Source of the DNA: Monocercomonoides exilis PA203
Lineage: Eukaryota > Protista > Preaxostyla
Direction of reading: 5' to 3'
Assembly (NCBI GenBank): GCA_001643675.2
Contig: LSRY02000017.1
Coordinates: forward strand, 372,001 to 436,000
DNA: 64,000 bases
Below, piece after piece: positions 6,694-61,145 of the stretch. The number at the start of each line of letters is the position of its first letter. The stretch's first letter is position 1. The position numbers were made by a program, and so were the translations under genes. The notes beneath the pieces are model-generated. The model saw only the letters and a program-made list of their open reading frames with translations. It made no database searches and was not told where the DNA came from.

Positions 6694-7052
6694 ATGGAGG
6701 TATCCTGAGAGATTATTTAGATTACATCATCATAATTGTTTTTTTATTGTCTTTATCTTTTTGATAAATTGTGTAATAATAGCAAGAAAGCATTGAGCAA
6801 AAAGAACCTGCGACAGCCGCTGAATTAACCCAGTACATTCAATCTCTGTTGGTTGATATGGTATTGTACAAATATTTTTAATTTTTGTGTTGTTTGTAGT
6901 TTGAATATTTTTATGTTTAGCAACAAAAGTTTCAAGAAACAACTGAAAGTGTTTTAAAGAGATTGGATGATATGAATACAAAAATTACGTCGCTAGAAAC
7001 ATCAGTCGCTGAAATGATGGAGCAAACTGGAACATCAGAAGATAAAATTTAA
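6694..7052 (+). CDS. HSBP1: Heat shock factor binding protein 1 (71 aa, 3 exons: 6694-6699, 6783-6860, 6921-7052)
   Basis: Manual splicing gives MEQESIEQKEPATAAELTQYIQSLLVDMQQKFQETTESVLKRLDDMNTKITSLETSVAEMMEQTG..., matching the HSBP1 coiled-coil consensus (LTxxVQxLLxxMQxKFQxxSxxIIxRIDDMxxRIxxLExxIxDLM). Confidence 0.85.
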
Positions 7053-38219: not shown

Positions 38220-38999
38220 ATATGGGTGATTTTTTTTGACATCATAAAAAAAGATCAAAAATCGAAAATATAAATTCTATTGTGGTATTAATTGATCAAA
38301 GAGTTAAATTGTTTTTTTGCAAGCATTTAGCATTAATTTCTGTAATATAAATTTGTTTTATTCCCCCCCCCCCCCCCCCCAAAAGACATACCTTTTTCAC
38401 TTTTTTTTGTGGAAAAGAATTTTTTTGATCAAGTTTTATAAATATTTACTAAAACAAACGAATAAAACTTCAAAAAAAATTGCAAATTCATAATTGGAAA
38501 AAACAAAACATTGAAAAGAAAAAATTAAAAATAAGAACAGAAAAGAAGAAAACAAAATTATTGAAACCAATTTATTATTAAGAGTTATTTTTCTTTTTAT
38601 TTTTTCTTCACCTTTGCACAGCCAACAAATCTCCATTCCTTTTATTCTTTTCATCAACTTCATCAAACGTTAAACAAAATCGTGGAACATTGGATAAATC
38701 CGATTTCAACAATGGAACTGATGTCGATGTCTGTGGAAGATAAGGACAGATACCATGTGCCACAATCGAGTATTCCCTCACTGGCTTCATTTTCCTCCTC
38801 CAAGACTCCTCCCTCACCCTCCTCAGCTCAACATTTGTTCCTCTTCAAACACTCACCTTCAGCGCAGCTGATGCAAAAATCATTGATAACAATTGACATT
38901 TTCTAATTTCATTAAAATTTCTTCCATTCATTAATTTTTTAAATTTTCCATATCATCGAAAAATCTTTGTGCCTTCATTGCTTTTTCAACAAGAGCATA

Positions 39000-41900
39000 T
39001 ATCATCACTAATTATTCGAGAAGTTTAACTAAGTTCCGAAAAAAATCTAACTTTGCCATTTTCCATTTGATTTGGCTTCTTCATCAAATGAAAATAAAGC
39101 TCGTTGCTTAAGGAATCATCTATTTCTTCTCTTCAAATAGCATTTCTTCAATCAAATCAGAAAGATTTTCAAAAACATTTATTTCCTCAACTTTCCGATT
39201 TCAACTTTTTCGTATCCAATTAGAGCAAGTGTCTCATATAATTTCTCTTCAAATATGTCTTTTCCTCTCAATTCCTTTTCTTCCTCGCTTCATTTGCAAC
39301 AATTCGCCTTGGTTTCGCTGCTGTGAAATCTTCCGAAGGCTATTTAGGAGCCCATCCATTTCATAAAACAATAGCTTCAATGTTCTTTCTGTTTTCACTG
39401 CAAATGCTTCAGCTTCCAAATAAAAATGGCAAAATCTTCCTCCTTTTCTGATTGTACTCCATCAGATACGCTTTTCTTGGATCAACGAAACACTGTCTTC
39501 TTTATCACATAATTTCTGCTGATATTCTGTGTTAGAATAAATAATTATCTGTGCTTCTGAATAGAAATGAAAGATGAGGCCTGACGATGAATTCGAGGGG
39601 AGTTGAATGAAAGAAAAGAAGAAGAAGAAGTTAAGGCAGGAAGTGATAGCGGAAGTGGGGTTGGAATAGCTGAATTAGAAGAAGAAAGAAGTTTTGCTTG
39701 GAATTGCAGTGAAGGAGATTAAGATGTTCTGAGAGAAGGAGAAGATAGTTGTTGGATGTTCATAAACAAGGACGAATTGACAAGTGATGAAGTACAATGA
39801 GAAAGAGGATGAAGAGCAATGTTTGGACTTGCAGCAAGATCAGCAGCTGAATTAAAAGGCGCTACCAAATTGAGTGAAGGATATTCTTCATCGAATCCGC
39901 CGCAGTTGAATTCTGCAAAGCGGAGAAAGATACCAATTTTGAGAATGAAAGCGCATCTCTTCTTCCAGGCACGTTGTTCTAGCTGAATGTTCTTATCCCT
40001 TTCTCCTTCTGAAACAGTTGCGGTTATCTTTTCCCTTCTCCTTTCCTTCCCTTTCTGTGTGTCACTTATGCTTCCTCTTTGCAGTTCCGCACGTCTTTGC
40101 TTAAGAACGATCTTCAGCGCACTCATTAGATCCAGTCTTGTTCTCGTCTGCCTCGCGTCGACTGCTGCACACACAGGCAATTTTCGCATCTTCCACACAA
40201 ATTGCCTGTTTTTTTTCGCTTTTGATACGCACATAACGGCGGGGCACATCCAATTCATCGCTCAAATCTTCAAAGACAGAATAAGCTTAATCATTCAGCG
40301 TGCAGTCCAATTTCCGCTCTCTTGTCAAAGATGGCGTTTGGCTTTCTTTCGCCTCTTGTTGGGCCTCGCTGGACATTTTGTTCTCTTTCTGGTTGGTCGG
40401 CGTGCCTGTCTCAAGATGTGGTTATAATACTCCTTGGATACTGCTAAACAGATTTTTGTCTCTTTCCTTTATCTTCTTCGCCATTTTCTCCATTTTTCTT
40501 CGCTCTTGCTCTTCTTTCTCCTTTTTCTTCTTCTGCATCTCCTGCAGTTTCATCAGCCGAAGCAGTTTTTCTCTCTGATCATCTGATTCCAATGAATTAA
40601 ACGTGATTTTCGCCTCTTCATCGTCCACTTTCCCTTTCTCATTCTGAAACTCATCTTGCATCACTCTTGTCACTTCTTTGTTCAAATCTTTCATCCCCAT
40701 CACACCCAACGTCGCCCCTCCTCCTCCTCCTCCAATTCCTCCTCCACCTCCACCTCCTCCAACGGTATGTGACAGCTGCGTTGTTGGTGCACAAACAGCT
40801 CCTCTCACCATTTCCATCTCTTGGCTGTACACAATCAACGCTCTCCCTCCAACTCCTCTCCATCCTCCGTCCATTCGCTTCCCTCGCGTAAAGTGTATCG
40901 TTCCAAAGGCGCCTCGTCCTGAAGTATATTGCTTAGGCTGTGGAGAAGGTGATGGTGTTGGAGAGGTATTTGCTGTTGTGTTCTGTTGTTGTGGTTGTTG
41001 CTGCTGTTTCTGCTGAGCTTGCGATGAAAGAGGCTCTGGCTTTGGCTCATCTGAATGCGTTTCGTCTTTTTTGCCGTTTTGAATTGACACTTTCGCTTTT
41101 GCATTCTTTTCTGCTTCTGTTTGATAGTCTTTCTTTTGAAGTCTTTCAACACTTTCCTGAGCTTCATTGTTTTCATTTCCTTTCTTTTTCATCGAAGCAC
41201 TTTGTTTTGTTTCAGTATCATTTGCATCATCATCATATGCTCCTTCCTTTTCACTCGCATCGCTCTCCAAACTATCAGTTGATTCGTCATCTGATAGAAT
41301 TCCCCCAACATTCACCACATTCTCATAGCTCATCAGCTTCAGAATACTCTCATCGTCTGCATTGTCCTCTTCATACAGCCATCCATCCCCTGAGCTTATT
41401 CCCCACCAGTCGTCGTTGTCAAACTCTTCTTCTCTTCTTCGGAACGCTGTCAGAATCTCCCGCAGCTTCTTCTCTCGAATGTCGTCTTCTTCGTCTTCGT
41501 TTATTCCAGTCAAGTTGCAAGCTTCTGTTTTCTTCTTATTCTTCATTTTGTTATAATTATTTTTGGATTTTGATAAATGTTTTATTTTCTTTTCTTTTGA
41601 AACAACTGATTTGGGTTTGTTCATTGAATCCTCCAAAATCACTTCTTCGTTTTCGTCGTTGTTCGAGTCATCATCATCTTCTTCTTCCTCATCTTTCGTG
41701 CTATCTTCATCGCCTTCAACTTCTTCTTTGTTTCCATTTTCATTCAAAGAATTAATCACTTCTTTCTCTTCTTTTCCGTCTTCTTTGCCATCCCCCTCAC
41801 TTTTTGTAGCATTCACACTCATTCCTGGTCTTTTTATCGATTCATCAATCGGCGTCGGAGAAAGCAGAAGGTTTGGTCTGACCTTCAAAAGCACTTCATT

Positions 41901-44900
41901 CACAACAGAATCTCGTTGAAGCTCAAGCGCCTGGTAATACCTTCGCATCAGCCTCTGTTTCTCTCTCTGCTTGTGACACTTCTCTCTTCGCTCTTCTTCA
42001 TCACTGATGATGGAGCTGTCGGAAAGGAATTCACTTTCTTCATTTTTTTATGTTTTCTTCAGAGAATTTCTTCTAATCAATGATATACTCTCGTTTTCTT
42101 CTGCTTTTGCTTTATATTCATTTTCATTGAAGCTATTATCCCTATCACTTGCATGCTTTAATTCCTTCCTCAACTTTATTTTTTCTCTTTTTCTTCTCTC
42201 CTCTCTCCTCTCGTTCCTTGCTTCTCTCTTTCGCTCTCTCTCTTTCTCTCTTCCTCTTCTCCAGATTCTCTGCATATCGCTCCATCATCCGAAACTCTGC
42301 AAACAGCTGTATTGCATCAAATACATCGGGAGGGAGAACAAAATATTGTCTTTTCCTTCTTCCTCTGAGCTGTTGCTTCATCCTCTTTATCTGCTGCTCT
42401 TCGCTTGTCAGAAATCTGTTTCTGGAAGAGCAAAGCAACGAGGAGGAAGAAGTAGATTAAGAAGAGCACGGTGGACATGAAGCAGAAGCAACTTGTGCAC
42501 AGCGGTTGAGATAGCTCCGGTGGAGTAGACAGTGCATTGTTCTTATGCGGCTCATCATGGCAATCTCAGAACGATGAGGTGGTTTGGGATGGAGAGAGAG
42601 GTCAGTTACTGCTGGAGAAGATGAGGAAGATGAAGGAGAGGGAGAAGAAGATGATTGAGGAAGAGAAAGAAAAGATTCATTGGGTAATGAAGAAGGAGAT
42701 GTGCCTGTGCCTGTGCCAATGCCAGCAATTGAATGAGTCAAAAATGTTTGTGTTGAATTCTGATTGCTTTTTCTTTGTCTTTGTCTTCGAGGCACATAAG
42801 ATGGATTCAGATCGCATCTGACTGAAAAACGGACAATTCTCTGCTCGAAATGAGGCTGTTTGCAAGCGAACCGAATCTTCTTCGCAGAATGCCATCTCCG
42901 TTGTTCAGCACTTGCTCAAAGAGGAAATCGTCAATGAGATTGGTTGCATAGCCAGGAAAGCCAAATGTGTTGATTGTGTTAAAGGATGAGTAGTTTTCGA
43001 GTGTCAATGGATTGACTCCACATTCATCGACTGCCTCGTCTGTGTCAAGATGCTCTACCCAATCGCCTAACAGTCTAAAACCAGGAAATTTCTCTCGTTT
43101 CTCTTTCTCTTTTCCTTTCCCTCTTTCTCTCTCTTTGAGTTTTTCCTTCCACTTCTCCTTCTCTCTCTCCCTCATTGCTGTTATTCGTGTTATTCCTCTC
43201 ACAGCATTTTCTCTTTTTCCCTTTCCATCTTTCCCACCATTCCCATTCTCATACATTCCAGTGAAAATAGCCATCATCCTCTGCTCTTTGTTCGACATCT
43301 GTTTGTTTTTCTGCCCCCATCTCAGTCTGTTCTGTCTCAATTGAAGTTTTCTTGCGCGAATGTTTGAAAATTCGTTGTCTTCATCAAAAAGAGGCAGCGG
43401 AGGAGGAGGAAAATCAGGTGAAGTTGAATGAGAAAGAAGCTATTGAGTGAGAAAAGAATGAAGGAGAGAAGGGATGTGTGAGAGAGAAGAGAGAGAAGGG
43501 AAAGAAGGGAAAGAAGGAGAAAGTGAAGAAAGGGAAGACGATAAAGAAGAAGTGGAGATGGAAGGAGTTGATAAAGAACGAATAACAGAAGAGAAAGAAG
43601 AAGGTTTGAGGGATGTTTTGAAGCTAAGTTGTGGTTGTTGATTAAGATGCTGATGTTGATGACGAGAACGAGAAATGAAAAAGAACATGAATAAGAAAAA
43701 TTAAAAGAAGAAGAAGTGCACGATGTGTTAAATGAGTAAATGTACGTTGGACACAGATGATGAATAGAGGTAGAAGAAGGAGAAAAGAGTTGAGTGGCGA
43801 AATGGAAATTGAAAGAAGATGAAAGATGAGAAAGAGGAGAATATTGAAGAGCTAATGAAGAAGGAACAAGGGAAGATCTGTTGGTTGAGAGAAGGCGGTG
43901 AATGAAAGGTGTATTGAATGAAAGAAAAGGATTAGGAGGAAGAAAAGGATGAGGTGGAGAAAGAGAAAAAAACAAGAAGAAATTGTATGATATGTTATTG
44001 ATATATATGATAAAGAAGAAAAAGAAGATGATGAATAAATGGCATGAGATGATTAATTGTTGGAAATAAAGAAGATGAGTGTCAATTCACATCAACTGAG
44101 AAATTCAATAAAATTCTCTTCTTCAGGATTTTGTTTTTTTCTGGCAAATAATAGCCTCTGAATCCTTTTCACTTTCAGCTCAATCCTCTTTCTCTCTCTC
44201 AAACTAAAAATACAAAGCATGCGTCAATCTCTTTTTGATTTCATCTTTCAAGCTTTCAATTCCCCTTCTTTCACAAAAAATCATCTTTTCTCAAAAACTA
44301 TTCTTCGCCAAAGCCCAATTCCAGGCATCTTCGAAATTTCTTGAATTTCATTTGTTCGTCTTTATTTGTTCTTCCCCACTTTTCTTCTTCTTCTTCAAAG
44401 CCATATAATCCTTCGCTTTTTCAACATCCTGAATGAAAAAATAATAATCACTTCAAAAAATATTCAACAAACCTTCTAAACATTTTTATATGGAATTTTC
44501 TGTTTTATATTCCATTGCACACTGTTTCCCTCCAATAAAAATTCTTTATTCCTTCCATTTTCAAATATTTCTTTTCTGATTTTCTAATCGTCCTTTCCGG
44601 AAGTCATTTTCCCATCAAATGCATCGATTTCCCTCTCTTCTGAAAAATGTGAAACTTATGTATTTTCTTCAATTTCATCTTTCTCATTGAAAAATATCCT
44701 TGTTTCTCGTCTGAAAATATCATTCCAAATTCCTTCCCAATCCCTTCACCCTGGGCACTTTCCATATGAATTCGCTCTCCCAACTTTATGGTCACCCTGC
44801 ACAACGAGATATCCCGCCTTCATTCATTTTCATTCATTTCTGCCTCCTGCCCTGAAAGAAAGAATAAAAACGGTCAATAAAAAATAATCATATATAGAAA

Positions 44901-45477: not shown

Positions 45478-46301
45478 AATATGCATAAAATTGTCTGACT
45501 TTTGTGTTGTGAGACGATTATTCTCCATTTGTTATTTGCACAAAATTTTAACATTCTGACATTATTTTGTGTAGTATTTTGTTGTTTAGTCGTTTTTATG
45601 GATGAAATTTTTATATTTGTGATGTTGAAAGTTTTTGAAATGAATTTCTTTTTCTTTTTTAAGAATCTTCAAATTCAAAAAATAATAAATATAAAAAATA
45701 AAGAATAAATGATCTTAAGTAGTTTCCCAAAAGTTTAATAATTGAATAAAAAATGTTTCATCATTATTGTTCAAATAAAATTATTTCCGCATTTAATTTT
45801 GAACGAATAAATCGAAAAAATATATAATTTCTTCAAGGTTGTATTTGTAAAAAAATATTTTAATCTGTAATTCAAAATATTTTAATTAGTCATCCATTCA
45901 TATATTAACAATTTTGTCCATTTAGTAAAAATAAAAAAATCAAAATGTTTTACTAAACTTTCATCTCTGATTAAATTTTTTTTTGAAAAAACATATTTTA
46001 TGCTGAAATAAAACAACTCAATATTTATTTTAAAAAAGAAAAGAAAATCAGTTTGACATTTAATATTGTTGATTATCAAATTTTTGTATTTATTTATTTA
46101 TTTATTTATTTTTTATGATTTTATGATTTCATTAATGAGCTTTTTGGATTGCTATGTGTCTTTTGAGAAAATTAAATTGTGAGAAAGAAAAAAAGAATTT
46201 CAATAAATAAAAATAATAATAAAAAAACAGTGAATGACTTCGGAATTTTTATGATTTTTTCATACTGAAAATACCATTATAAATTAAATATTTCTCAAAA
46301 A

Positions 46302-48826
46302 ATGTCTTTTTTGAAACCTCAATCAACTCTTAATTCTAGATCGAAAATTCTTTGGAAAGAAATTGAACGCATCGGTGGAGATGATATTGATTCATTGCTT
46401 GTCTATCTATTTTACAACTACAGGCAATCATCTTCAGTAATTAACGATTTGTTGAAGTCAATAAACGGTTTGATTATTTTTTAGTTAAGTTTTATATTGT
46501 AAAATTTATGGACTGTCATTGTTGTCATTTTCTTATTTATTTGCTAATTATTTTTATTTATAAACAGAATATCATATAAAGCTGCTGGAAGACCTGTCTG
46601 TGGTGTACAACAACGCTCCGTTGCACACTCAGACAACAATGCTGCAAGCGCTTTCCCGCAACACATCATTGTCCGATTTACTGGACTACGGATATGATGT
46701 CACAGAGGGAAAATTTATTTACGCGAAGCAAACACTGAAGAAAAACCAAGGATTTATTATTCCGCCTCAAAAACCTCATCTTCCGTCTTGCAAAAGTGGT
46801 TTGTATTTATTTAAATTATTTTAAATAATGTTCTCTTTTTTCCTAAGGCTTAAATGAACAGGATTGGGAAAAGGGCAACAACTGGATGTTGGCCCATTCA
46901 ACTGAAGCTTCAACTTCGCTTCAGTCAGCAAAAAAAAAGCAGCGAGCTGAGCCAGATTACTCAAGATTTATTGACGAAGCAGCGTGGGATGAAGAAATAA
47001 TTACGGAAAATTCTTCTTCAAATAAAAAACAATCTTCTTCTTCTTCAACATCATCTCAACAAAATAAAAAATCGAATCCCATTTCAGAAAATAATTCTCC
47101 ATCTTCAAATTCAACTTCTTCTCAAGCTGTTGATGCTCCAATCAGTACTCCAATTAGGAGAGAAAGGGGTTCAACAAAAATAAAAACAAATAAATCACAG
47201 CATAAACGTCATTCATCTCCTTCACCAATTCCAATTCACAAACTTTTCAAAACAAAAAAATCAACATATTCCTCTTCTTCCTCTTCTTCCTCTTCTTCCT
47301 CTTCTTCCTCTTCTTCCTCTTCTTCCTCTTCTTCCTCTTCTTCCTCTTCTTCCTCATCCTCCTCATCCTCCTCATCCCCCTCATCCCCCTCATCCTCCTC
47401 ATCCTCCTCATCTTCCAAAAAGCAACAAGAAGAATCAAAAAATTCTTCTCACATCGAAAAATCTTCAACATCCTTTCGCAACGATGATGTGTGGGTGAGT
47501 GATCAATTAGTCGAATATGCCACTTCACCCACTCTTATTCCTCCTCAAGCATTCCAAAATCTTCTTTCGTTATTTTCAAAAGAAATCAACACTTCATCTT
47601 CTCAACATAATACACAAACAGATGATAGTGATTTATCGCTTTGTGATAATTTTGCACAAACCATGTCAAACAGCAATGCAATGGATGTTCTTCCTGCAAT
47701 TCAATCTCCTTTCATCTCTCTGTCTTCTTCTCATTCTTATGATTCTTCAAAAACATTATCAAAACTGTCAAAAGGATTACCGAATTTGGGAAACACCTGC
47801 TATTTTGCTTCTCTTCTTCAATGCTTCTCTTCTGTAATGTCACAAAAACCATCTTTATTCAAAAAACGATCAACAACAAAGAGCATATCTTCTCGTGTTT
47901 TAAGTGTATGCAATCAACTATCCAAAGATGGAAATGAAATTCGTTCGTGGGTCCCATCGCTTATTAATAAATGGGAAAAATATTGCAACTATGGCTGCAG
48001 GCAGCAACAGAATGTGATAGAAGCATTTGAAAATCTTCATCAACTTCTTCAAATTAATAAGATATTAGAAAAGGATACCTTCAATCCTGTGCTCATTACT
48101 CATTTCAAATGTCAAAAATGTCAAAAAGTTTCTAATCATTTCAATGAAGCCTGCAGTAATGTTATCATTAATTCATCATCTCCTCATAAAGGTCTATCTT
48201 CTATCTTTTCAACTGAGATATTGAACGGAAAAAATGCTGTCTATTGCAACGATTGCAAAGAGAAATGCTGTGCTGCGAGATGGGAGGAAATGGCTGCATT
48301 TCCAGACGTGCTGGCCCTCTGTCACGAATGCACTGATTCTGCTAGCTCTGCTCCTTCGCGAACTCTTCTGATTGAAACAGATCGTGTTTACAAGCGAACA
48401 TTTATCAAAGGGTTTTTAACAGAAAGTATTCAACATCTCCAAAAGAACAATAATGAAATCATCATATATCATCTTGTTGGGCAAATTCTTTTTCAGCGTC
48501 TGGATCAACAAAATGGGCATTACATTGCAGTTGTGAAAAGGAAGGCAGGAAGAGAGGCACTGTGGAATATTTGCAACGATTCTGATGTACTTGAATTGGA
48601 CAAAGAAAACTGGACAAAGGAATGGAAGGATCTTTATGCTCAAGGTTTCACTCCTTCGCTCTCATTCTATATCAAAGAAAAAACCAAACCAACTTTTTCA
48701 TCAATTCAATTTGGTGGTTCTTTTTCTTCTTCTTCAGAAACATTAGATTTAAACTATTTAAATAACACATCATCATCAACAACAACAACATCGTCGTCTT
48801 CGTCATCATCATCATCATCATCATCA

Positions 48827-48862
<36 letters not shown>

Positions 48863-50236
48863 TCGTCTCCATTCATCACTCCACCTCATCGTTCAACTTT
48901 CATTCCTCCACTTTCTTCGTCAATTTCAACAAGATATGGATTGGAAGCTTTGAAAGATAAAAGAAAGAAAACGGGCATCTTTTCTCCCAATGAAAAGAGA
49001 TTAATCTTCAAGCCCAAGACGAAATTATGGAGTGAGTTCACAGAAGAAACAAACATCAAAGTTTCTCTGTCACATTTCTACAAACTCACTACTAACTTCT
49101 CGAAAGCGAAAAGGCGCACAGATCTCTGTGGCATGTGTGAGAAACTCAACTATCTGGAAAACAAATTAAAGTCATCTCAAAACAAAAATGGACTTTCTTC
49201 TGCTGAGTTTCATACACTAAAATTACTTCGTCAACATCGACTTGTTGCAGAAATGCAACGAAAACATTATCAATCAACTGTCGACAATCTGAAAGAGGGA
49301 GAAGCAGTCTTCGTCTTCGACTTCAAAGAGAAATGGAAACTCCCTATCGGAAAGAACCAACTTCAACAGGAATTCTTTAATTACCAACAAGTCTCTCAAT
49401 TCACAATCATTTCTCTTCAAAAAATAAATAATCAACAAATTAAAAGAACTTTCAACTTCTTCTCCGACTGCCTTTCAAATGATCACAGATTTGTTATTGA
49501 GTGTCTGGAATCTGTGATCAAAAGACACTTCTTCTCAGACACTCATACTTTTAAGTTCTTCTGCGATTCTGGTCCACACAACCGAAATCGCTTCCTTCTT
49601 CACTTCATCCTATCCAAACAATCAAAACTTTTGAAAAAGAAAAACACTCAACTCAACTTCTTCGCTGAGCACCATGGAAAAAATATTTGCGATAGTGAAT
49701 TTGGTGCACTTGTGAACACAATCAACAACAACATATCAACTGAACACATCACCACACTTCATGACTTAATCAACTTCTTCGACAACAATATGAATGTTTC
49801 AACATCTGCTTCTTCGACATCACAACAAGACATTTTTGAATCATCCTCAACCAATTCTTCTCCATCAACATCAACTGTCAATAACTCTGTGCATGAGAGG
49901 TACTTTGAAGAGTATGTACCATCTCAGCAAATTTCATGGCCATCTCTGTCAGTCCCTCACATGAAGGACTACTTGTATTTTGAGCGCAAGGGCTCATTTG
50001 TCTGTGCTTCAGCTGTTGGATATCTTCCTCAACGCTCTCTGGTTGCCCTCGAATCTTCGACAATTAAAGAAAAAGTGCAACGTTCAAGAAAGACCTTCAA
50101 CTCTGGTAACACATCATCTAACTCTTCTCTTCTTTCTCAATCTTCTCAAGATCTTCTTTCAAGGAGATTTGAGCTTCTTCTTGACTCTTCTTCTTTTAAT
50201 GAATCTCAAAATTGTATTAATGGTGTTCCCTATTAA
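46302..50236 (+). CDS. Sola2-like DDD transposase with an inserted ubiquitin-specific protease (C19/USP) domain; 3 exons (46302-46467, 46568-46798, 46848-50236), 1,261 aa
   Basis: USP Cys box GLPNLGNTCYFASLLQC, QQNVIE, two CxxC fingers, His box GHYIAVVK..WNICNDSDV. Transposase features: TDLCGMCE, H..AEMQR, VFDFKE, QQEFF, FCDSGPHNRN, FFAEHHGKNICDSEFG. Both introns splice in phase. Confidence 0.85.
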
Positions 50237-51300
50237 GAAACTAGTTGTTGTGTATGCTCAGCTGGCACTCGATCGGAAGGGTGCTGGACATGACTGTTCG
50301 TATTAGATATTGCAGCCTTCGGGCTGCTTTATCCGGACCTGGATACGACGAACAGCCTCCCAGGTACACAATAGTTAGAATCCGATTGTTTTCTTTTGGT
50401 TATTGTCCCAATATTGTCCCTATTTATTTCTTGGTTATTGTCCCGCTTATATATGTATTTATCGAGATTCATTAATAGAGAGTGTTGTGAAGGAATTCAT
50501 TGATCTTTGACTGAGGTTTTTGGAAGGGAGAGTTGTTGAAAGTGTGAAATGTTGGCTTATCATTGTGTCTGTCTTTTTTCAATGTTGGATTTGATCTTTT
50601 GAGTCAAAGTGAGAGAAATATCAGAAAGTGCAGAGTGGATGGAAAACAGAGGGAAAATAGACAAGTTAGTTTTTGAACTTTTTGTATAAGTTTTCTTTTT
50701 GTTAGGAATTGTCTTTGATACCATGAATTTGTTGATATAGTAATGCTTTTTATTGAATCTTTTTTGTTCAGAATTTTTGGTTATTTGATAATGATGAGTG
50801 AGAATTTCGAGAGAATGAAATTGAAAGTGAATAAGTTTGTGTTAGCTTGAATGAACAAGACGTTAATATTGTTTATTTTGTTTATCGTTTGATGTTGCGA
50901 AAAGTTTTTGAAATTGTTTTTATTTGTTTTGTTTTGTTTTTCAAGTGTTTCAGTTTTTATGTTTGTTTGTTGTTGTTTCAAAGAACCAACTCATTTATTT
51001 CGAAATATTTTTAACATTGTGCACAGCGAACTAATTTTATTATTTGAAATGTTTTTGTTAACAATAATGAACAACAATAATGTGAAAAAATCAAATCAAC
51101 TGATTTCATCAAGGATTTGAAAAAACAATGAAAAAATTTATATTGCAATTAAGAGTGAATATACAGCTAAGAATTCTTATCCATTAAAAATAAACGAAAC
51201 GAAAAATTATCATCTCATCAACGAACAGATTAAATTAAAAAATATATATATAAAACACAAAAATTTCTTAAAAAAAAAAAAAGGAAATTTCATGCAAATC

Positions 51301-52549
51301 CAAATAATTATGGATCTGATCATAAGGAAAAAATATTTTTAAGGTATCCCACGAGGGTCACACCTTGGGTGGCATTTTTTTCGCATGAATCGATTTGTTA
51401 GAATGACTGTGTGTGAAATATGTCAAAAAAAGGGGTACCAAGGTGTGACCTCTTTTTCGAAAAATGTATCTCAAATTTTCAGATCAAAAATCTATGAAAA
51501 TTTTTCGCTTTTTTGTTCTTTCAAGAACGAGAAAATGCTTATATTCTATTAGTGTTCATACGCTTCATAATTATTAAAACAACAATATTCATTAAAAATG
51601 ATTAAAAAAAATGTGTGTTTAGAACTTTTTTCAATGAGAAAAAATTCCATAACTTTATTTCAAAATGTTCTTTCAACAATTTTTCTCACATTGACGTTGC
51701 ATCGAGGTTTGTTATTTGTTATCATATGAGGAAAACACATGTTTTTAAACAAATCTTTTCATAGACAATCAATAGGTGTTCTTTCTTTTGTTTTTAATGA
51801 AAATATTTATATGATTGATATGCCAAAGAATAATTGCTAATAAAAGGCAGAGAAGGAAGTTTGGTATTTATTTATTATTTCTATATATGATTATTTTTTA
51901 TTGACCGTTTTTATTCTTTCTTTCAGGGCAGGAGGCAGAAATGAATGAAAATGAATGAAGGCGGGATATCTCGTTGTGCAGGGTGACCATAAAGTTGGGA
52001 GAGCGAATTCATATGGAAAGTGCCCAGGGTGAAGGGATTGGGAAGGAATTTGGAATGATATTTTCAGACGAGAAACAAGGATATTTTTCAATGAGAAAGA
52101 TGAAATTGAAGAAAATACATAAGTTTCACATTTTTCAGAAGAGAGGGAAATCGATGCATTTGATGGGAAAATGACTTCCGGAAAGGACGATTAGAAAATC
52201 AGAAAAGAAATATTTGAAAATGGAAGGAATAAAGAATTTTTATTGGAGGGAAACAGTGTGCAATGGAATATAAAACAGAAAATTCCATATAAAAATGTTT
52301 AGAAGGTTTGTTGAATATTTTTTGAAGTGATTATTATTTTTTCATTCAGGATGTTGAAAAAGCGAAGGATTATATGGCTTTGAAGAAGAAGAAGAAAAGT
52401 GGGGAAGAACAAATAAAGACGAACAAATGAAATTCAAGAAATTTCGAAGATGCCTGGAATTGGGCTTTGGCGAAGAATAGTTTTTGAGAAAAGATGATTT
52501 TTTGTGAAAGAAGGGGAATTGAAAGCTTGAAAGATGAAATCAAAAAGAG
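51301..52549. repeat. Right copy of the 1,249-bp inverted repeat
   Basis: Mirror of 44229-45477 (paired positions sum to 96,778). Confidence 0.95.
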
Positions 52550-58420: not shown

Positions 58421-59033
58421 AGATGTTCGTGTGACAAAAGCATTTTTAGTGTTAAAAACAAATATAAACAAATTTCTATTCAATTTTTATTATTCTCTTT
58501 GTTATTTTTCTATATCTTTGTTTGATCAATTTATAAGAATAACTAATTTAAAGAATTTTTTGTTTCTAAACAAAAACAAACCAAACCGTTGTATATCTGA
58601 TAAATATAATGTGTTTCTATTTTGTTTTTCCATTTGTGTTTTTGATATTGTAAATTTTTAACAAATGTTTTAAGATCTTCAATATCAATTTGAAATTTTT
58701 TTTGTAATAACATCATAAAACTAATTTTTATAAGAAATTGATAAATTACGTATTGTTCTAATTATTATCATGTTTTAATAACGTTTGAACGAGTATTTTG
58801 TTCTGTTTGCTTCAGTTTTGATATTTTTTGAATTAGAATTATATGTTTTTTTCTAAATTTGTAATAAAAATAATGAGAAACAAATTTTTATCAACAAACA
58901 AATAATAATTATTATTTTTAAAGCAATCAATTATCATGATCATCATTTTCAATTTTCCAATCAACCCCACCCTTAATGAAAAAATATTTTGATCAAACTT
59001 CGTAAATTTTTATGATATCAAAAAAAATCACCC

Positions 59034-59714
59034 ATATCCTTCTTTTTCTATTCCGCTATATGCTGACCATTTATCAGATTTTAGTTTCGATGTTTTGTCC
59101 ACGTGCTTTTTCACACATTTCACTATTGTCTCTTCTGTTCTATCCGGAATAAATTCAACTTTCATTTTCTGATCCTTTTCTTTTTCTTTTCTTTCAACGA
59201 TTCCCCAGAGCCATTGTTGCTCTCTTATTCTTCCAATTCCGTTCTTGCTTTTTGCAATTAATGTTTCGTCAAGTTCTACGTTTCTTTCAATTCCTAATTT
59301 TTCATTTCGATTCATTTCAATAAATATGCAAATTCTTCTCATCAGTTCGTTGAATTTTAATACAGAAAATTTCGAAGTATTTGTTTCTTTAACTGTTTCT
59401 TCCACAGAGTGCCTATACCAAAAATGGTAGATAAGGCACATAATATTAAAAGGACTGAGTTTTATTATTTCAAAGATTGAATTTTTATTCCAATAGTACT
59501 CTTTTTGACATTTCAAACATCTGTACGAATAATTATTCTTCGCTTTCCTCCATTTTTTTAATTTCATTTTTCTTTTGCACAGTGGGCAAGAAATTTCTTC
59601 TCTAATTAATCCTAACTCCTTTAAAGTGCGCAACGCATAATCATCATTTCCTCCAGAAGCAATAAGAAATTCAGTGAATGTTATCAATGAAGATTTTCCT
59701 TTTTCAGAAATCAT
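59034..59714 (-). pseudogene. N-terminal part of the Merlin B transposase
   Basis: CPLC..YRCLKC zinc ribbon, LGIERNVELDETLI, GR..QQWLWGIVER, IPDRTEET, LKSDKWSAY. The ATG is ~30 bp inside the right TIR. Confidence 0.9.
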
Positions 59715-61145
59715 TTCCACCGAAATAATTAATTGAAAAAAATTTGAAAAATAATAATAATATTATGGGATATGTGATCAATACAAAAAAAATCGAAAAA
59801 ATAAAGTGAAGCAATTTTTATTATTCCGATCGATTTTGGCAATAAAAAATTATAATCTTTCACAATTTTTAATTAAAAATTTCCAAAACAAAGCAGAAAA
59901 AATGGTACAATTCAGACCTATGCCAAATAAGTGATCACTGAAGAGTGAAAAGACTCAATAAAGACATTTGAATATTGATTTCAGCTGATTCACTTTATCT
60001 CAAAACAGTTGTGATAAATAAAGCATATTAATTCAAAAGCTCTTTTCAATGACAAGCAAATTTTGACAAATCTGCAACCCGAAAAAAGTTATGATTTCAA
60101 AAATAATCACCCATTTTCATCAAATTTTCATTCAAACTCACCAAATGTCACCAGCATGAAAACAAATATATGACGCTGTTATTATTTCTATGCTGGTATA
60201 TTTTGATGAGTTAATTTGAAAGTTTAATGAAAATTTACAATCTTCATTTTCACCTGAAAATATAACAACTGAAACTTATCAAAAAAAATTTTATTTGATA
60301 TTTATTTTTTGAACTTTTGTATGAAAAAACTGAGGACAATAAACATCTCAAATAGTGCAGTGTTTCATGGGTTTATCTTTTTGTTTTTCTTGACATGAAT
60401 TTTTGAGAAATTTTTTGATAGAAGAATTTGATAACAAAAAATTTCAACATGATGATATCAAAAATTATTCCAATAATCACAGAATCATTTCATCAATGAG
60501 TTCAATGAAAAATTGAAAAGTTTTTTTCATTTTCATTCTTGAAAAAGATCATTTAAGAACACAAAAAATGTTCTCATTCTTCTCATAAATGAAATGAAAG
60601 AAAAAAAATTGAAATAGATAAAAACAAAAAGATATTTGTGACTTTCCTAAAAAGTTTTTTCCCAAAGAAACGTGATAATTTCAAATTGATAAAAAAAACT
60701 CACTTTTATTGACTTTAAAAATTATCATGTTTCAACAAGATATATTTTCTTCAATATTTTTATCGAGTATAATTGATATTCTTTTCTGTTTGTTTTCCTA
60801 TGTTTAATTCTGATTATCTATTAATCTATTTTTTATTTTATTTTTTTAATTAACATTAAGTCTTTCATTTATAAATAAATCCAAAAATATAATAACGCAA
60901 GATAAACAGTGTTTTTAAGACGCAAAGAAGTGAAAATGAGGAATGAAACAAACACACACAAATCTCTTCTCTTTCTTTTTTGTGCACATTTTTTAAAATA
61001 ATCAAAAGTAATGCACTTTTACATCAATACACAAAATATGTTAATTATTTGGAGCAATCCACCTATTAACCAGTTCATTTTGCACAAGTAATATGACAAA
61101 TAATTATTCACAAGTCACTCTTATAATCAATCTTTGTACAGAGTT

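Follow-up and report, generated by a model that had tools for sequence, protein, structure and literature searches.

The 64,000-nucleotide stretch of the Monocercomonoides exilis PA203 genome analyzed in this study (contig LSRY02000017.1, positions 372,001 to 436,000; the whole stretch is referred to as the window) contains a Sola2 transposon, and the transposase gene of this element encodes a ubiquitin-specific protease (USP, peptidase C19) inside the transposase. The gene has three exons, and the USP is located between an N-terminal domain and the DDD core with its three aspartates. The evidence shows that this Sola2 transposase carries a selected internal USP, which probably functions as an active, tethered deubiquitinase serving transposition.

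All coordinates are window positions unless a contig is named (C14, for example, denotes contig 14), and residue numbers such as Cys305 and Asp812 follow the 1,116-aa frame at 46886-50236. The genome searched was that of M. exilis, 82.3 Mb in 101 contigs.

Domain order of the transposase gene

The features of the gene, all on the + strand, are as follows.

46302-46467, +: exon 1, with an ATG start common to all subfamilies in the alignment of copies
46468-46567, +: intron 1, GT..AG, comparative evidence
46568-46798, +: exon 2, conserved N-terminal Sola2 domain, presumably DNA binding, from hhalign against USP-less homologues
46799-46847, +: intron 2, GT..AG, comparative evidence
46848-50236, +: exon 3, with linker, USP, linker, DDD core, C-terminal tail and stop codon
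47267-47416, +: poly-Ser linker 1, of differing length between copies
47774-48685, +: USP (peptidase C19), from Pfam UCH and matches to USPs in the PDB
47798-47800, +: USP catalytic Cys305, in GLPNLGNTCY
48518-48520, +: USP catalytic His545, in GHY
48578-48580, +: USP catalytic Asp565, in CNDS
about 48767-48868, +: poly-Ser/Thr linker 2
48995-49765, +: Sola2 DDD core, from invariant residues, the AlphaFold2 model and BLASTP to Sola2_PPa
49127-49138, +: CxxC motif of the core
49319, +: core Asp812
49565, +: core Asp894
49673-49693, +: core HGK-x3-Asp936

The open reading frame listing of the window contains 46886-50236 (+) as a single stop-free frame of 1,116 aa. An initial annotation, made from the sequence of the window, had proposed a spliced frame of 1,261 aa with two introns, and the three exons do sum to 1,261 codons, as computed from the joined exons; the exons were searched one by one, and for the joined product only the length was computed. 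In a DNA alignment of the 5' region of 19 copies, GT..AG is preserved in both introns, the intron lengths differ by indels that are not multiples of three, and the changes in exons are mostly found at third codon positions. This comparison of the 19 copies supports both upstream introns. Additionally, the public gene model MONOS_8902 has an identical junction of exon 2 and exon 3 (..CKS-G-LNEQ..), and MONOS_12024 holds the USP and the core within one protein; the public models of M. exilis copies are fragmentary and labelled only 'uncharacterized protein'. The motifs quoted in the initial annotation were all located where it had placed them, starting at 47774 (GLPNLGNTCY), 48515 (GHYIAVVK), 48572 (CNDS) and 48995 (KRLIF), and in the C-terminal part at 49121 (DLCGMC), 49319 (DFKE), 49562 (CDSG) and 49673 (HGKNICDS). 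The two poly-Ser linkers said to bracket the USP were also found, at 47267-47416 and about 48767-48868.

The USP matches Pfam UCH (PF00443) with E 5.5e-12 and 46.3 bits, compared to a cut-off of 23.9, and residues 297-575 cover model positions 2-242 of 254. Against the PDB, phmmer returned USPs exclusively. The best of them was USP36 (E 8e-7), the alignment of which puts GLPNLGNTC, GHY and NDS on the catalytic positions; the USP12 alignment is concordant. A profile of the copies likewise matched USPs alone and reached USP12 with E 1.4e-27, a score that may be inflated by the one cellular USP row held in the profile. The Cys box conforms to the canonical motif of USPs, and the zinc ribbon of the fingers has both of its CxxC pairs. 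As judged from these motifs, the domain is a genuine Pfam UCH domain with its Cys, His and Asp positions intact, and its earlier description as a catalytically complete USP is borne out at the level of motifs, which are kept in nearly all copies sampled.

The C-terminal part is a Sola2 DDD transposase, as had been proposed, according to its homology, its predicted RNase-H fold and the AWWT target-site duplications (TSDs) of the element. A phmmer search with the core against 1.84 billion representatives gave 697 matches at E <=0.001. In alignments of 43-58 homologues, D746, C748, C751, D812, D894, H930-G-K and D936 are invariant, and D812, D894, D936, C748, C751 and H930-G-K are also invariant in 20 genomic copies. 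Two bona fide Sola2 transposases are printed in the supplement of PMC3627910. Six exact strings of one of the published sequences, Sola2_PPa-1, occur in the Heterostelium/Polysphondylium protein PPL_04538, and the core matches this protein with E 2e-15 in phmmer and E 4e-23 in BLASTP (28% identity over 259 aa, spanning all three Asp). Pfam has no Sola2 model and gave a weak DUF7869 signal alone for the core.

Structure prediction, which had been suggested as a check of the core, led to the same assignment. The AlphaFold2 model (predicted local distance difference test score, pLDDT, 83; predicted template modelling score, pTM, 0.77) has the order b1-b2-b3-a-b4-a-b5-a of an RNase-H fold; of the three Asp, one is on b1, one follows b4 and one is in the helix that comes after b5. 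The top PDB matches of this model in Foldseek were Hermes and IstA. In VIA-align, Z scores of 9-11.3 were obtained to retroviral integrase cores, Mos1, SETMAR, TnsB and IstA, and 50/50 rows among the matches listed were integrases or transposases.

The position of the USP can be understood from relatives of the transposase that have none. The exon 2 peptide matches the N-terminal regions of 11 USP-less homologues, always 5' of the core, and hhalign of exon 2 against a profile of these 11 N-termini gave a probability of 97.9% and E 5.4e-13. Pairwise BLASTP of exon 2 to the N-terminus of PPL_04538 was not significant, and significance was reached only with the profile of closer relatives. The spacing between N-terminal domain and core is roughly 60-110 residues in the USP-less homologues compared to about 700 here, made up of linker, USP and linker. 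Because exon 2 corresponds to the N-terminal domain of USP-less relatives, the USP is an internal insertion, as the initial annotation had it, placed in the linker that joins the N-terminal domain and the DDD core of ordinary Sola2 transposases.

Conservation and age of the fusion

Copies of the gene in the genome were compared with regard to the USP. In family A, to which the window copy belongs, the USP region is present in 19/19 copies examined; the Cys box is found in 18, and the remaining copy (L013) is truncated there. Nearly all of the 19 retain Cys, His and Asp, and one copy has GHF in place of GHY. A USP-deleted copy was not seen among 20 sampled. By the Nei-Gojobori method on 18 copies, the ratio of non-synonymous to synonymous substitution rates (dN/dS) is 0.19 in the USP (dS 0.83), 0.045 in the core (dS 0.49) and 0.46 in the part that precedes the USP. 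These comparisons of copies indicate that the USP is under purifying selection.

The fusion is not confined to family A. In family B, the transposase is 55% identical and the USP 33% identical to those of family A, with the same exon structure. The family B USP keeps NLGNTCY, GHY and ND, and its domain order is the same without poly-Ser linkers. Moreover, genome scans with PF00443 and P0002 revealed at least 3 further lineages in which a UCH match lies directly 5' of the transposase match in the same open frame. They include 992-aa frames on contigs 91 and 9, frames of 914-926 aa on contigs 13, 14, 21 and 43, and another on contig 91, and their transposases are 37-58% identical. The loci of these lineages for which coordinates were recorded are the following.

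C91:627736-630138: further fused locus
C9:392289-394691: further fused locus, 992-aa frame
C13:1535617-1537854: further fused locus
C14:2062818-2065052: further fused locus
C43:525021-527246: further fused locus
C91:1920492-1922990: further fused locus

Since these further lineages are fused as well, the USP-transposase fusion characterizes an entire clade of Sola2 elements in M. exilis. In a maximum-likelihood tree from a quick search, which has long branches and covers the USP-bearing lineages A, B and P0002, these three form one clade together with one metagenomic fragment (Shimodaira-Hasegawa-like approximate likelihood ratio test, SH-aLRT, 98). Homologues from Blattamonas and Streblomastix are placed outside the USP-bearing clade in the same tree. 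Among transposase homologues from other organisms, phmmer found the USP in 0/149, and Pfam UCH was found in 0/57 homologues scanned. Judging by this distribution, the fusion is old and common to several diverged Sola2 lineages of the M. exilis genome.

With respect to the origin of the USP, word-based searches of 5.8 billion proteins, which reach near relatives within a length window only, found no close cellular relative; all that they returned was pieces of the M. exilis copies plus a single weak USP from a metagenome. A failed search of this kind does not show that the USP is without a cellular source. In a protein language model, the neighbours of the USP are compact UCH clusters of giant viruses; this is a lead only, not evidence. 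With 126-161 bits, the strongest matches to Pfam UCH anywhere in the genome come from giant frames of 3,250-10,690 aa without stop codons, found at no fewer than 13 loci such as C18:971861-973780, C69:1943494-1944951, C2:942835-944391 and C36:2171498-2173009. It is possible that these giant UCH frames were the source of the transposon USP.

The 20.8-kb element and its family

The initial annotation had regarded the gene as the sole undamaged one amid decayed genes. This description does not hold, as the surrounding 20.8 kb are one transposon and the gene is its transposase. The features of the element outside the gene are listed below.

38224-59033, +: full Sola2 element, 20.8 kb, with boundaries where copy homology ends
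38220-38223: left TSD, ATAT
38224-38250, +: left 27-nt terminal inverted repeat (TIR), GGGTGATTTTTTTTGACATCATAAAAA
44229-45508: left arm of an internal inverted repeat of 1.28 kb that flanks the gene
50237-50395, +: block of ~160 nt directly 3' of the stop codon, near-invariant between copies, with a predicted multi-branch RNA fold
51270-52549: right arm of the internal inverted repeat
59007-59033, -: right 27-nt TIR
59034-59037: right TSD, ATAT

The homology of many copies begins at about 38220 and stops at about 59037. The two TIRs of the window copy agree at 26/27 positions, and the TIR has 2 matches in the window, compared to 0 expected. In the genome, 415 matches with <=2 mismatches were found (199 forward and 216 reverse), while a control pattern gave 0. 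All-A/T 4-mers flank 189 perfect termini, and among the 100 flanks listed, nearly every one has the form AWWT; a 4-bp AWWT TSD is a hallmark of Sola2 (PMC3627910). Six left/right pairs have flanks that are not palindromic (ATTT with AAAT); in each pair the two flanks are exact reverse complements, and the 4 bp are therefore a true duplication.

The family is abundant and recently mobile. A six-frame search of the genome with the core gave 444 candidates, of which 108 were scored, most of them 88-100% identical. About 49 of the 108, counted from the match table, are free of stops over 1,000 aa or more, a length at which the frame must include the USP. Some of the apparent frameshifts of the copies are located in homopolymer runs, where they may result from errors of nanopore sequencing. 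In total, the family comprises roughly 200 copies. A copy on contig 14 is 99-100% identical over the element parts compared, and the match ends at the TIRs, which points to recent transposition and not to segmental duplication. On this comparison, the window copy is an apparently intact member of a recently mobile Sola2 family.

Facing TIR pairs that enclose a gene copy are 17-29 kb apart. Other facing pairs with matching TSDs and a perfect TIR are only 4.4-6.9 kb or 12-13 kb apart (for example C1:2516291-2521606, C8:623776-628233, C17:958322-963828 and C7:1458081-1470859), and these are probably non-autonomous deletion derivatives. At the family-B locus L029, a family-A TIR is present just 3' of the transposase gene (6771-6797 of the locus, C9:353451-353477), which suggests that one Sola2 element was inserted into another. 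At the right end of the window copy, a different repeat (59034-59926; copies on contigs 13, 45, 15 and 9 at 83-93% identity) starts exactly at the Sola2 end; therefore, the element lies in or next to another repeat.

The arms of the internal inverted repeat are 99.8% identical within the window copy. At loci L013-L023, internal inverted repeats of 1.26-1.43 kb have arms that are 97-100% identical within a copy and 84-94% between copies, and concerted evolution is thereby indicated. Copy L015 (contig 11, around 772570) has its central gene segment in the opposite orientation with respect to the outer arms, from which it follows that recombination between the arms inverts the gene segment. Other subfamilies are without internal inverted repeats. 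Apart from the transposase gene, the element contains a 508-aa open frame at 40422-41948 (-), which is acidic, Lys-rich and of low complexity with a Gly run. A Pfam match was found for none of ten other frames in the element (the 508-aa frame and nine of 130-212 aa), and no Fanzor- or TnpB-like frame was seen among these ten by Pfam.

Two conserved sequences adjoin the gene. At least 40 scored copies, which represent all family-A subfamilies, share the block of ~160 nt after the stop codon at 96-100% identity, far better conservation than that of the coding DNA. RNAalifold predicted a multi-branch fold of -54.4 kcal/mol with 51 pairs. Two pairs each occur with three standard pair types, none is broken, the hairpin loop is variable, and the + strand folds better than the - strand. 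The block is without a match in Rfam at E 0.01 or better and was not found in family-B loci by blastn. This predicted structured RNA of ~160 nt may represent a second functional module of the element. On the other side of the gene, the motif TTCCATAATAAATT at about 46275-46301, ~25 nt 5' of the ATG, is kept in all subfamilies in the copy alignment, and the DNA further 5' of it is unrelated between subfamilies. This motif may serve the transposase gene as its core promoter or initiator.

Proposed role of the USP and comparison with known systems

The USP is predicted to be active and to act while tethered to the transposase. It would then travel with the transposase to the transposon ends. There, it might strip ubiquitin from the transposase itself and prevent proteasomal turnover, an option that is slightly favored here, or it might strip ubiquitin from chromatin or repair proteins at the site of excision or integration. 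Either deubiquitination would raise the success of transposition. A stronger proposal makes the USP an obligatory, catalytically active component of the transpososome and has it decide the success of excision and integration through deubiquitination of transposase, chromatin or repair factors; this is put forward tentatively and seems somewhat more doubtful than not.

Several points weigh against an active, tethered deubiquitinase. The non-catalytic H-x-G before GHY reads F-Q-R, off the canonical His-box pattern, and the AlphaFold2 model of the USP domain, based on a shallow 17-row alignment, has a pLDDT of 47.9. Values of dN/dS between copies, including the 0.19 of the USP, mix selection on active lineages with neutral decay after insertion, which pushes them up. 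The non-synonymous evolution of the USP is about four times faster than that of the core. Also, the evidence is compatible both with self-protection and with a target in chromatin or repair.

The unusual His box and the fast divergence of the USP (33% identity between families A and B, compared to 55% for the core) speak for a USP that is catalytically dead, or a mere ubiquitin-binding module that steers the transposase to ubiquitinated chromatin or a ubiquitinated partner with no cleavage. Pseudo-deubiquitinases that bind ubiquitin without cleaving it are known. However, every lineage sampled has retained the Cys box and the three catalytic positions, which a pure binding module would not need; a dead USP is therefore considered unlikely. 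It could also be that alternative splicing, internal initiation or cleavage in a Ser-rich linker yields a USP and a transposase that work apart from each other, and that the fusion exists only in the gene. The long poly-Ser linkers on both sides of the USP and the fragmentary public gene models agree with such a separation, which is nevertheless rather unlikely, as about 49 copies have an open frame from the USP through the linker into the core, other lineages have continuous frames too (992 aa and 914-926 aa), MONOS_12024 has the USP and the core in one protein, and family B shows the same domain order without poly-Ser linkers.

The remaining explanations concern the nature of the domain and of the family as a whole. 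Transposons often capture fragments of host genes, and no family is recognizable for the remaining open frames of the 20.8-kb element, both of which would suit a USP that is a neutral passenger without a role for the element. Such a passenger would hardly show a dN/dS of 0.19 at a dS of 0.83 with its catalytic residues kept, nor persist in frame in at least 4 lineages with transposases only 37-57% identical, with no USP-deleted copy seen among the 20 sampled. A passenger is thus very unlikely. The many intact frames and the low dN/dS could likewise be expected of a domesticated, multi-copy host gene family that is not a mobile element. This last explanation is the least credible of all, since there are 415 occurrences of the 27-nt TIR, the 4-bp TSDs vary between sites, the homology of copies stops exactly at the TIRs, and identical ends are found on the shorter derivatives (4-7 kb and 12-13 kb).

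If the USP is such an obligatory, active component, this transposase would be the first of the cut-and-paste type to bring along an enzyme that counters the ubiquitin system of its host. Here the deubiquitinase domain is built into the transposase itself, and the family is both young and numerous; many of its copies are apparently intact, and its ends are well defined. Point mutants can therefore be tested for deubiquitinase activity and for transposition, and the role of the ubiquitin/SUMO deconjugation proteases recruited by transposons becomes a testable question. In addition, unusually large Sola2 elements (17-29 kb) are documented in a metamonad, the family is classified in a poorly annotated genome, and dozens of 'uncharacterized protein' models are accounted for, so that the public annotation can be corrected.

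Compared with cellular USPs, among which the best matches of solved structure are USP12/USP46, USP34, USP36 and USP15, the transposon domain has the same Cys box, QQ-x-EAF-like motif, two CxxC pairs, GHY and (N)D; its identity to them is just about 20-27%, and it is compact, with about 300 aa. Cysteine proteases borne by transposons are of the Ulp1/C48 type in MULE, CACTA, Zisupton and Ginger and of the OTU type in Helitron2/Helentron. The M. exilis element has in common with these that a cysteine protease of ubiquitin or ubiquitin-like deconjugation was recruited by a transposon. The C19 USP, in contrast, belongs to a different clan and fold, and it is embedded between two transposase domains instead of being appended or separate. 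To our knowledge, the role of transposon-borne Ulp1, OTU or UCH proteases has been established in no case.

According to the initial annotation, a C19 USP embedded in a transposase is not known. This stands for DDE/DDD transposases, for which no such case was found, but a UCH domain is known from HLE2 Helitron-like elements, where HELIANO (PMC11417382), the one report of a C19/UCH domain in a transposon within the literature searched, lists Pfam UCH among 20 domains stably carried by Helitron-like elements, with enrichment in two HLE2 subgroups. C19/UCH in a transposable element is thus not unprecedented, and its fusion with a cut-and-paste transposase was found in no description. The literature searched gave no USP, UCH or deubiquitinase in a cut-and-paste transposase, Repbase and Dfam entries lying outside the comparison. 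Both HLE2 and the M. exilis elements stably carry C19/UCH at a conserved position relative to the transposition enzyme. HLE2 elements, however, encode the rolling-circle RepHel and not a DDE/DDD cut-and-paste enzyme, and PMC11417382 gives nothing on catalytic residues or selection. In M. exilis itself, 35% of the assembly is listed as 'unclassified repeats' with no transposon family named (PMC8767320), and the genome papers mention neither transposon families nor deubiquitinases.

The closest known elements are the Sola2 elements of dictyostelids (PMC3627910), DFa-2 of Dictyostelium fasciculatum and PPa-1, -4 and -5 of Polysphondylium pallidum, which have a homologous DDD transposase. The motifs CxxC, DFKE(N), WxDxGxHF and HGKSxCD, the short TIRs and the 4-bp AT-rich AWWT TSDs (ATAT, AAAT, ATTT) are common to both. 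Both are also large and contain extra DNA, with 12.9-15.3 kb in dictyostelids and 17-29 kb in M. exilis. The dictyostelid elements have a separate Fanzor1 gene and no reported protease, whereas in M. exilis no Fanzor-like frame was found and the USP is inside the transposase. Unlike the dictyostelid elements, those with the USP are hosted by a metamonad, an oxymonad.

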